Below, one piece after another: positions 35,900-40,300 of a stretch of 64,000 bases of DNA (positions are counted from its first letter, which is position 1; each line of letters begins with the position of its first letter). The stretch is taken from positions 146,754,001 to 146,818,000 of the forward strand of contig OZ320313.1 in NCBI GenBank assembly GCA_976226885.1, in the 5' to 3' direction. Under the pieces are notes generated by a model that worked only from the letters and a program-made list of their open reading frames with translations, did no database searches and had not been told where the DNA came from. The position numbers and the translations under genes were made by a program. This DNA is from Iphione sp. A-MEVVRFRX5 (Eukaryota).

Positions 35900-37350
35900 A
35901 CGTACCTCAGCAGATGCGTTCGTTACTCTAACATTGCGAACGGGGCGGTTTTCCTCCCGTTTTAGCATGAAGGTGGATCGTATCCGATAATATACCATAG
36001 GCTTTTCCTTCTAGAACTATATCTCCTGACATGTATACGTCCTTCGTCGACGAATTCGCTGAAAATGGAGCTCGCAATGGTAGTCACCTCTTCCTTGACC
36101 ATGACAAACTCTTGTTTGCTCGCAAATGACTTTCTCCGCAAATATCTCCCTCTTTTCCTTTCTCCCTGCTTGCCTTTAGTTTTTAGCTGGACCCGCTTCC
36201 TATCCGGAATCCACTGAAAGGATTTCAGATTGGTCCACCAACCGCTACGGTCCGTTCAGGAGGGGCAAAGGTGTTTTTCCCCAACAATTGAAATGGGTCT
36301 GGAACCTTATCCCGTCCCGAGTAAAAGGAACCATCCCTCGGGAAGGTTTAACGGGCTCACACTATCAGCACCGCGTTGCTGTGTGGCAACAGACTGGGAA
36401 GTCCGACTGGGCGCCCCTAATAACGAGCTGCTCGCTTCATCTACCGAGTCTCTGCAGTTAATCAGCTGGTCTGCTCTTGTCGGGCCCGTGCACCGACTAC
36501 ATACCCATTGCCTCCCCGGAGCAACTGGTAATCTATGATACCAGGTAGAAAGAGTCTGCAGACTGGCGATCTTTTTAAGATAGAGAGATTTTGACAGCAG
36601 TTTGTTTACATACCTTATTGATGTTTAGATGATAAGTAATCGATTCATAGGTGATGTTATATAAGTGCCCGTAATAAAGTCCAATACATGTAGGCACAAC
36701 AATTAAACCCTGCAAAGATATAAGTATTTGTAGCGCTAGTTTTGAATATGCACTACATGTATGTAGACACATTTGCATATGTTGCATTTTTAGTGCATCC
36801 AGTAGCTGGTACAAGTATAAAACGGAAACTTTATTAACTTAAACAACGCAGCCATCTGTATTCAGATCCGGAGGGAGTCCGACTTTCATGAACTCTCTGT
36901 CGTGTTTACTTCCCTTGAGAATTTGCCAACTTGGGGCTTCTTATACACAAGATAAGTCCGTCTGCCAAATGGCCTTTGTACTGATATATATATAATGTAA
37001 CTAAACTTATATTTTCAAATAACTGGAAACTCATGTCATCTGCAATGATATCCTCCCTCTCAATCACGGAAGCATTACCATAAAGACAAAAAATCACCAC
37101 AGGCGTCTTTACAATTATAGTTTATATATGTATGTGGATTATACATGCTGTGTATACATATGCATACATCCTCCTACGTGAAATTGCTGCAGGTATCAAG
37201 TGAGATCAATAGAAAGATAATGAAAATAATCTGGACTCCGGGCAAAATAGCATGGGTCCCTATACATGTCACTATTATAGTTACGCAAAGGTTCAGAGTG
37301 CAGCGGACTGATAAGGGCGAAGGCAGATGCGCTCCACTTCCAGTAGCAAA
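35900..37350. promoter_or_regulatory. CpG-rich region between the divergent GPCR and PTGR2 starts (candidate shared promoter and 5' UTRs)
   Basis: The genes are head-to-head and the region is visibly CpG-rich against AT-rich flanks. A minus-strand donor GAG|gtacgt lies at 35906/35905. Confidence 0.4.
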
Positions 37351-40300
37351 ATGTTTTCCTCTCTGCGGTCTGTTCGCACTTTAGTGAATAAGAGAGGTAA
37401 TGTGAGAAACTTTCGGAGCACGTCTTTGAAGAACATGACATGTACTAACCGACATGTGGTCCTAAGAAGCCGGCCAGGTTTGTATTTTAGCACTTTCTTG
37501 TTGACTGTTTTCTTTGTTGCAGGTTATGATTAGATGTATGCATTCTGACTGGAGGTGACTTAGATCTACTGTTGTTGATACAAGATAAAACAACCATCGT
37601 TGCCGTTTTAAAGTAAATGACGCGTCTAAAATTATGAAAATCTTGCGAGTTTCCTTAGAGTAATACTTTAATGATCAAAGAAAATCCTCTTTATATATAG
37701 GTGTGAATGGTGTCCCACAACCAGAAAACTTTTCTTGTGAACCGTGCTCATCAGTCAACACGGAAGAATTAGGGGACAATGAAGTCGTCATAAAAACATG
37801 CTATCTTTCGGTGGATCCAGCACAGGTGAATATAGTCATTACATCATTATCACATGTTTATGTATGACATTTACATAATTTGTTTTATTCAAGGGCATGA
37901 AATACCTGGTGTAGCCTTGCATATAGTAATGAGGGTTCTTATACCAAACAAGTGAAAATCTGAAAACAAAGGCAACGATGTTTCTATTTTCATTGACACA
38001 ATAAACAGTAATTGTATAAGGGACACTGTAAAATCAACAAGTGTTTAGTTTTAAATACATTCATCTGATGCCTTTTATACATGTTAATATTTTAATAGAA
38101 ATAAACACATATGCATTTATGTATAAAAACGTAAATAGATTAACATGATTATGGGCTTCTAATACTTTTTAAACAGATTTTTTTTTACAGTGGATGCACC
38201 AGTGTATCTATACGTGTGCTCTGTTTTGTTCACGTGATATCTCACTTGCAGCAGAGATCCACCACTTTGGCTACCATTCATCCTCCCCAAATTTGACCTC
38301 AATAGGCACTTTCCTGTAGTTTTGAATACGTAAATATTTACCGATTTGTATGCCTCAAGTATTACCATCGATATTCTATACATCTGGCACGTATAGAATC
38401 CTACACACCAGTGCAAGATTAGAAGCCCCCGCTACATCTACACATAGTAATTAAAGAGTTTGTTTTAGGCCCGGTTTCCTTACCTGCGGGGCCGTCTGTT
38501 GGTATGCGTGTGCATTTCAGTGCGGGAAACGCATCAGCAGGTGTTTCCGCATGGCAACGCACAGGGGTGTCCTTTGACACTCAGTGCGGACCGGTGCGGA
38601 CCGGTGCGGACCGGTGCGTTTATGCCTGGTAAAAATACGAAAAACGGCAAAAAGAGTGCCGAAAACCGGCAAATTCCATGCAAATTGTCCCGAAAGAGTC
38701 TTATTCCATGCAAATTCGGCCGAAAACCGGCAAATTACATGCAAATTCGGCCGAAAAACGGCTAATTTCATGCAAATTCGGCCGAAAACCGGCAAAATGT
38801 GCGGAAAAATTCGGGAAAAAAACGATTTTGTGCGGAAATGTGCGGATATGTGCAGTATCAACATCCAAAAGTGAGTCAAAGTGAGCCAAAGTGAGTCAAA
38901 ATGAGGAAATAGCAGTGCATTGGTGTGCGTTGCTGTGCGTGTGCGTGGAATTTACGGGAAGGGACCGAAAACGGGCTCCGCACGGCTCCGCATGGCTCCG
39001 CACACGCAGAGCACCGCAGGTAAGGAACACCCCTCATTAAAATCACCGTGACAGTAAAATCGGCGCGTTTTCCGCACTGAAATGCACGCATGGCTCCGCA
39101 GGTAAGGAAACCGGGCCTATGCGTGCATATCCCGTCCCGTACGTGGGATGGAAAAACATTTATGAAGTGACAATAAAGTTCTAAGCATTTTTCAAATACA
39201 GGTATATGTGAATAGCCTTTGATTGTGTTTCTTTTCCTGAATGTAACCTGAAGTTCTTCCAACTTCTCTTGTTTCTAGAGATGTCAAATGAACGAAAACA
39301 CAGGAGCAGACTATGTGCCCCCATGGATGTTGGGCCAAACCATCGTTGGTTTGGCCGGGGTGGGTTCAGTGGTAGCATCCCGCCACTCCAACTACCAAGC
39401 TGGGGACCTCGTCTATGGTTCGCCATCTTTCCCCTGGAGCGACTACTTCATTCAAAACATGGAGCTGGCCAAAGACCAATTTACAGTGGTTAGTCCTGGC
39501 AGAGAACATTACCGCCACCGTGTAGGGTGGAATAGAACCAACCAATGTGTAGGCGGTTTTCCATGTGTGCAGCATGATATTTCTCTATGTTGCCTACCTT
39601 TTTAGGAATACAGAAGGGGAAAAAACTCCGGATCTGCGTAAAAACTATACTTAATATCAACATTTGTCTGAATCGATAGTAGGTCATTCATTTGAAGTGT
39701 TCCATCGGCTACATGTAGCAATTAAGTGCGTCGCATGAAAATTCCGCACATGGAAAAACTGCCAAACGGAGAACCTTACAAATGATTTGGGAAATGCGTG
39801 TACTTTGCCGAAACTACACTTTTCATTTATAAGTATGAGCATTGTATTGTAATTGCAACTTTAAGATGTTATGAAAAGCTTGTCCTTTGCACTTATAATC
39901 TGATTCATCCAGTGCTCTGTGAAGTTGGCATACAGAGTAATCTTTCATATAAAATTTACAGATTATTGTTGCAAATAATCTTTGCAGCTTGACGCAACCT
40001 TCTTCAGGAACCGGTTACCACTGGCATTGAGCCTACTTGGAATCGCCGGCCTAACAGCCTACTTTGGAATGACAGAGAAAGGTCAAATCGTTAATGGAGG
40101 ACATCAGACTTGCGTTGTCAGTGGTGCTGCCGGTTCGTGTGGATCCATTGCTGGCCAAGTGAGTCGAGCTGTTGAAAACGAGCACATAATTCCCAACTCT
40201 CTGTGCTTTTTAATAGATTCATACCCCCTCTTACACAGCCAAACGTAGACTTATACCTAAGCATACCTGTAATGTGACCACTTGAAGGATCAGTCAGTTC

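Follow-up and report, generated by a model that had tools for sequence, protein, structure and literature searches.

The DNA under study is a stretch of 64,000 nucleotides from Iphione sp. A-MEVVRFRX5 (assembly GCA_976226885.1, contig OZ320313.1, positions 146,754,001 to 146,818,000 of the forward strand), and "the window" refers to this whole stretch. On its plus strand it carries a PTGR2-type gene of 8 exons (37351-43509), which we assembled from open stretches and splice sites. GT-AG is found at every exon border and the frame is intact. The product has 386 residues when read from the ATG at 37351 and 358 residues when read from the ATG at 37435, the codon for M29. We concentrate here on the 28 residues between these two codons, which resemble a mitochondrial presequence.

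A PTGR2-type reductase with an extended N-terminus

The identity of the enzyme was addressed at several levels. Exon 3 matched the Pfam family ADH_N_2 and exon 5 matched ADH_zinc_N, and both families were also matched by called exon open reading frames (ORFs) of L001 and L002, two related loci described below. When exon 3 was compared with solved structures, the PTGR2 structures 2ZB4 and 2VNA were the top matches. Against annotated PTGR2 proteins of molluscs, one annelid and vertebrates the mature protein reaches 52-56% identity, identity of the window protein to a mammalian PTGR2 is ~51%, and the gene groups with PTGR2 in a maximum-likelihood tree. In the alignment, human Arg53, Cys54, Tyr64 and Tyr259 correspond to Arg85, Cys86, Tyr96 and Tyr297 of the window protein; human Tyr51 and Phe99 are not kept, Ala and Pro standing in their places. 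Tyr64 reportedly belongs to the NADPH/substrate residues of human PTGR2, a role for which work of Wu et al. from 2008 is given as the source. The roles of Arg53, Cys54 and Tyr259 in the human enzyme have been described (PMC12081876). Taken together, the window gene encodes an intact PTGR2-type reductase (15-oxoprostaglandin 13-reductase / enone reductase), which is probably active.

Upstream of M29 the frame stays open. The sequence and its translation confirm, as a preliminary description of this DNA had stated, that one frame spans the ATGs at 37327, 37351 and 37435; this frame reaches the GT donor after 37477. A count of the residues likewise bore out the composition given there, since the extension contains 5 Arg and 2 Lys and neither Asp nor Glu; alongside these 7 basic residues we find 5 Ser and 2 Thr. 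Presequences are as a norm N-terminal stretches of 15-50 residues that are basic, free of acidic residues and rich in Ser, Thr, Leu and Arg, and the window extension matches this norm. Residues 4-14 appear amphipathic, with an 11-residue hydrophobic moment of 0.66, and VRTLV fits the phi-x-x-phi-phi (TOM20-type) motif. Furthermore, R19-N-F21-R-S-T24-S-L-K-N28 fits the R-10 pattern R-x-(F/L/I)-x-x-(S/T/G)-x-x-x-x (defined in PMC7996597) and ends right before M29.

Canonical PTGR2 N-termini have a few residues only before the first strand, and in other animals all 169 full-length homologues have at least one acidic residue within their first 28 positions. The earlier statement that M29 aligns with the start of vertebrate PTGR2 holds in part. 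With the VVL strand as anchor, M29 matches the start Met in Lamellibrachia, which is the nearest named relative, but a global alignment puts the mammalian M1 on residue 31, two after M29. Coordinates of the extension and the exons are collected in Table 1.

Table 1. Features of the N-terminal extension and coding exons of the PTGR2-type gene in the window
Feature	Position	Strand	Basis
In-frame stop TAA closing the frame upstream	37312..37314	+	Sequence, translation
ATG in frame further upstream, followed by 7 codons (MRSTSSSK); context weak	37327..37350	+	Absent from L002, whose ATG has an in-frame stop 4 codons ahead of it
Exon 1 (coding): ATG, extension of 28 codons, codon of the ancestral Met, first beta-strand, GT donor in phase 1	37351..37477	+	Homologous exon L002 7432-7555, L005 8030-8153
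Mitochondrial presequence (predicted) of 28 residues with a net charge of +7	37351..37434	+	Composition, motifs; kind and length kept in L002/L005
Out-of-frame ATG, then immediate TGA, between the two in-frame starts	37400..37405	+	Sequence
R-10 pattern; MPP is predicted to cut after N20 and MIP/Oct1 to take off FRSTSLKN as an octapeptide	37405..37434	+	Motif definition PMC7996597
M29, the ancestral start Met and predicted N-terminus of the mature enzyme; candidate second initiation site	37435..37437	+	Translation, alignment
Exon 2	37701..37825	+	Gene model
Exon 3: ADH_N_2; Arg85, Cys86, Tyr96	39279..39488	+	Gene model, Pfam, alignment
Exon 4: Rossmann glycine motif	39988..40158	+	Gene model
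Exon 5: ADH_zinc_N	40866..41075	+	Gene model, Pfam
Exon 6: Tyr297 (Tyr259 in human PTGR2)	42203..42324	+	Gene model, alignment
Exon 7	43142..43229	+	Gene model
Exon 8: stop codon; the protein ends in HVSNP	43402..43509	+	Gene model

Related loci and the origin of the extension

A HMMER search with exon 3 returned mainly exon-sized ORF fragments, and the two closest came from the ENA assembly ERZ25767047 (loci L001 and L002). The same assembly holds further copies, namely L005, which is ~95% identical to L002, and L006/L007, which are ~97% identical to L001. For L002 a complete model of 385 residues was obtained, with eight exons and intron phases as in the window gene; the mature enzymes of window and L002 are 66% identical (34% diverged). 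A maximum-likelihood tree of 45 homologues gave the order (Lamellibrachia,(L001,(window,L002))), with supports of 96/83, 99/97 and 100/99. Judged from this placement, the lineage that carries the window gene is annelid-like. It follows from the topology that a duplication gave rise to the L001-type and L002-type paralogs before the window species and the ERZ25767047 organism split.

In L002, exon 1 opens with an ATG that an in-frame stop precedes by four codons, and 28 residues (MSVVRLLRSLSVMGTTTRSFHLSSRSSA) precede Met-Ile-Glu-Asn-Arg-His-Val. The L005 extension is the same with four substitutions. Both contain 4-5 Lys/Arg and no acidic residue, have 11-residue moments of 0.64-0.67 and possess a phi-x-x-phi-phi element. 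In the window, in L002 and in L005 alike, the Arg of R-x-F-x-x-S/T precedes the VVL/VIL strand by 17 residues. The extension is hence conserved in a related organism, where length, basic acid-free composition and R-x-F-x-x-S spacing are all kept. On the contrary, the L001-type paralog has no extension. Its first exon was absent from the nearest 8 kb and was located on L007, 17 kb upstream of exon 2. Its product begins MDNNHHVVLKTRP, MDNNHHVVL, and a TGA stands in frame five codons ahead of the ATG. Since window and L002 share the extension and the L001-type gene has none, it was gained on the window+L002 branch after the duplication. With mature parts as diverged as these, an unused or untranslated 5' leader would be expected to decay and not to keep frame, start and composition. 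From this sequence comparison we conclude that the extension is a conserved coding feature rather than a chance open frame.

When a clean alignment was used as query, full-length members of the window+L002 clade were not among the matches, the next one after Lamellibrachia scoring 511 vs 792 bits, and no annotated or transcript-derived protein of the clade appeared among 8000 candidates scored, the best 120 of them listed. A scan of JGI metagenomes with the exon-3 alignment gave 81 pattern matches, of which 0 were confirmed. At L008 (the P0004 locus) no exon 1 was found within 7.7 kb upstream, and a synteny comparison between the window and the foreign loci (G-protein-coupled receptor neighbour, translated flanks) yielded no signal. 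A 28-codon basic frame upstream of exon 2 in L003/L004 (from GCA_013332895.1 and a metagenome scaffold; L003 87-170) was not counted, because it comes into frame only via a non-canonical acceptor and the normal phase-1 acceptor excludes it from coding. P0080 (Logan/ENA, 374 aa) is a distant, Asn-rich, single-ORF PTGR2 homologue on a long branch. It has a basic, Ser-rich N-terminus with Arg19-Ser-Phe21 just before the first strand, which is presequence-like. This sequence, probably from a protist, may represent an independent gain of a similar presequence.

The four PTGR2-type loci of ERZ25767047 fall into two pairs, and all four contigs have 37-40x coverage. The flanking DNA of L002 and L005 is 90-95% identical; L001 and L006 are ~94% identical and differ in intron sizes. 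Each pair may consist of recent duplicates, of homeologues or of haplotypes that have diverged strongly. Intron 1 of L001 contains an 863-residue transposon-type ORF (5523-8114, minus strand; DUF8422, faint GIY-YIG, HTH_animal) that L006 is without, and exon 6 of L001 ends at a GC donor (14024/14025, AAG/GCAAGT) instead of GT.

Proposed targeting, processing and start codon choice

The features of the extension suggest the following course of events. Translation would begin at ATG 37351, and the basic amphipathic start would be recognised by TOM20/TIM23, leading to import into the matrix. The mitochondrial processing peptidase (MPP) would then cleave after Arg19-Asn20, exposing the destabilising Phe21, and the mitochondrial intermediate peptidase (MIP/Oct1) would take off an octapeptide, so that the mature enzyme starts at the ancestral Met29. 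The extension itself would have been gained after the duplication through an upstream AUG, with the sister paralog retaining a short, cytosolic-type N-terminus. By sequence, the N-terminal residue would be Phe after MPP and then Met (window) or Ala (L002/L005) after MIP. A destabilising residue after the MPP cut and a stabilising one after MIP correspond to the N-end-rule logic described for MIP substrates (PMC7996597).

According to the preliminary description, cleavage ends exactly at the conserved Met. This applies to the window, where the R-10 fit ends before M29, but not to its relatives. In L002/L005 the pattern comprises R18, F20 and S23, with A28 as the +1 residue. One residue has been lost there between Met and Asn-Arg-His, and the predicted mature end is consequently Ala28, one residue before the Met. 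The position of the predicted cut relative to the fold is thus conserved, and its coincidence with a Met is specific to the window.

Start codon contexts were compared with the Kozak rule in its general form, which is not calibrated to this organism. They read aggcagATGc at 37327, agcaaaATGt at 37351 and aagaacATGa at 37435. The weak context of ATG 37327 and its missing counterpart in L002 make 37351 the likelier start. A CAG is found 4-6 bases before the ATG in the window (37342-37344), in L002 (7425-7427) and in L007 (about 20078, minus strand), with a clear pyrimidine tract in the window only; a splice acceptor joined to a 5' non-coding exon could lie at this CAG.

The preliminary description had proposed that alternative initiation produces a mitochondrial and a cytosolic isoform. 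As in peroxiredoxin V (Prx V), one mRNA would be read from both AUGs, the long form being imported and trimmed to Met29 and the short form staying in the cytosol as the same mature enzyme. The window has two in-frame AUGs and a predicted R-10 cut exactly at the second Met, this Met is retained in L002/L005, and mouse Prx V is an exact precedent (PMC7996597). Retention of the Met is, however, expected from ancestry alone, and the codon may be a relic of the ancestral start. ATG 37351 has an A at -3, so that a leaky context is not obvious, and in the window an out-of-frame ATG-TGA at 37400 intervenes between the starts. L002 and L005 have an in-frame Met13 in strong context (gtgATGg), which would capture leaky scanning, and L005 has another Met at residue 22. 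The Ala predicted as mature end in these loci, one residue off the Met, and the extension-less paralog of the relative also speak against a dual start. Alternative initiation is therefore unsupported, and we consider it unlikely. The presequence-less paralog would be a simpler source of a cytosolic enzyme.

Several observations weigh against a matrix-targeted enzyme, and some of them would suit an extension that is translated and acts elsewhere, either as a disordered basic tail (membrane/nucleic-acid contact, regulation) or as a signal for another compartment. The support for mitochondrial targeting is confined to composition and motifs; the 18-residue hydrophobic moment of the extension is not above that of shuffled sequences, 70% of which equal it; and primary sequence is poorly conserved, at 38% over the exon. 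L002 and L005 differ at 5 of the 84 bases of the extension, all of them amino-acid changing, which is close to the divergence of the flanking non-coding DNA and hence about the neutral rate. These two loci show no sign of short-range constraint on the residues of the extension, which is usual for presequences and is not positive evidence for one. Conservation of the extension refers to one other organism (two loci, one assembly), and the paralog without it has been seen only in that relative. Regarding the processing, Arg-10 is not critical (PMC7996597), and for human MIP no preferences at P8 and P5 were seen on peptides (PMC4459094). A non-mitochondrial tail is nevertheless improbable in our view, since low sequence conservation is typical of presequences, and composition, length, N-terminal position, phi-x-x-phi-phi element and R-10 pattern all fit one. 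Other signals were rejected. Inspection revealed no hydrophobic core as in a signal peptide, the window extension has neither His nor Gln, no PTS2-type pattern was seen by eye in that of L002, and the C-terminus of the window protein (HVSNP) contains no SKL-type peroxisomal signal.

It is also conceivable that the extension is never made, if transcription or a spliced 5' exon starts downstream of 37351; Met 37435 would then be the sole start and the open frame a coincidence. M29 does sit at the ancestral start position, and chance alone produces an upstream ATG at a distance of 24-32 codons, in frame and with no stop between, at 4.8% of random window positions (4-5% in either locus, window or L002). 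When absence of Asp/Glu and at least 6 Lys/Arg are added, the chance falls to 0.07% in the window and to ~0.1% (1e-3) per locus, a filter stricter than L002's own extension, which has 4 Lys/Arg; with the R-10 pattern also added it is ~5e-6 at random window positions. Length, frame, start and composition moreover recur in a relative whose mature protein has diverged by 34%, and the stretch between the starts in L002/L005 is free of out-of-frame ATGs. We regard an untranslated extension as very unlikely.

On balance, we favour a presequence-bearing PTGR2 paralog that would be targeted to the matrix and trimmed by MPP and MIP, with a probability of roughly 0.6; import, both cleavages, matrix location and substrate are all predictions. 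A mitochondrial presequence, as originally proposed, is supported by composition, amphipathic start, TOM20-type motif, R-10 pattern and the same spacing to the fold in the diverged relative. If the single- and dual-localisation versions are counted together, this broader reading is likely, its probability lying between that same value and an appreciably higher one.

Surroundings, significance and known systems

The PTGR2-type gene has a divergent neighbour. An intronless ORF of 480 residues (32660-34099, minus strand) of the rhodopsin-family seven-transmembrane type (Pfam 7tm_1, E 5e-27) lies in a G+C-rich block ~3.2 kb upstream of the PTGR2 start. Intron 2 of the PTGR2 gene contains short tandem repeats with periods of 10, 31/62 and 20 and many overlapping open frames on both strands (38584-39003), and this cluster looks like a repeat element within the intron. 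At a greater distance we found a reverse-transcriptase fragment (3148-4206, plus strand; RVT_1, E 2e-17), presumably a retroelement remnant, and a long GA-type microsatellite (58700-58830, plus strand) that reads (Glu-Arg)n in one frame. A Ser/Glu/Lys-rich open frame of ~250 residues with no Pfam match (60746-61513, plus strand) adjoins a run of N at 61712-61876, which is an assembly gap or masked.

Work on PTGR2 treats it as a cytosolic enzyme; it inactivates 15-keto-PGE2, which is a ligand of PPAR-gamma, and has an effect on oxidative-stress responses. If the matrix location is correct, some animals would have transferred NADPH-dependent reduction of alpha,beta-unsaturated ketones to their mitochondria, where it could serve to detoxify products of lipid peroxidation. 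The locus would then offer a clean, datable case of presequence birth, in which a gene was duplicated, an upstream AUG was taken into use and the ancestral Met stayed at the point of cleavage. Both R-10 processing and the gain of a presequence by a duplicated gene are textbook knowledge, so the value would be that of a new case and not of a new principle. More tentatively, and with clearly less confidence, we suggest that an annelid lineage possesses a dedicated matrix PTGR2-type reductase, which arose by duplication and AUG capture and is trimmed by MPP/MIP to the ancestral end, P0080 being possibly an independent instance. If true, this would suggest that selection has more than once favoured the reduction of reactive enones (oxylipins, 4-hydroxynonenal-type products) at their site of formation.

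Our literature search returned no description of a mitochondrial PTGR2 and none linking PTGR2 with MitoCarta, and human PTGR2 has been grouped with non-mitochondrial proteins (PMC12036814). The window protein and vertebrate PTGR2 (2ZB4, 2VNA) have the fold family, the domain pair and the equivalents of Arg53, Cys54, Tyr64 and Tyr259 in common. The difference lies at the N-terminus, where vertebrate and other sampled animal PTGR2s begin at or a few residues from the first strand and the window gene adds 28 presequence-like residues. In its predicted architecture the extension resembles that of mouse/human peroxiredoxin V, which has two in-frame AUGs, an R-10 presequence processed by MPP and then MIP, a Phe at the end of the intermediate and a mature protein equal to the short form (PMC7996597). 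Peroxiredoxin V is an unrelated enzyme, and both starts and cleavages were shown by experiment there, whereas here they are read from sequence; in addition, a second start may be superfluous in the window gene owing to a separate paralog.

For the evolutionary and biochemical side, parallels come from further afield. Arabidopsis paralogs of the late embryogenesis abundant (LEA) type are reported to form pairs distinguished by a targeting sequence at the N-terminus (PMC6032150); as proposed here, duplication was followed by the gain of an organelle location by one copy, in another kingdom and another protein family. Chloroplast ceQORH is a medium-chain dehydrogenase/reductase (MDR) that is reported to reduce enones and oxylipins inside an organelle that produces reactive carbonyls (PMC5343027), again in another kingdom and in a different organelle. 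Animal MECR/Etr1 proteins are NADPH-dependent MDR double-bond reductases that are imported into mitochondria (PMC9899272). They belong to another MDR subfamily and act on enoyl-acyl carrier protein of mitochondrial fatty acid synthesis, whereas the window gene clusters with PTGR2 instead.

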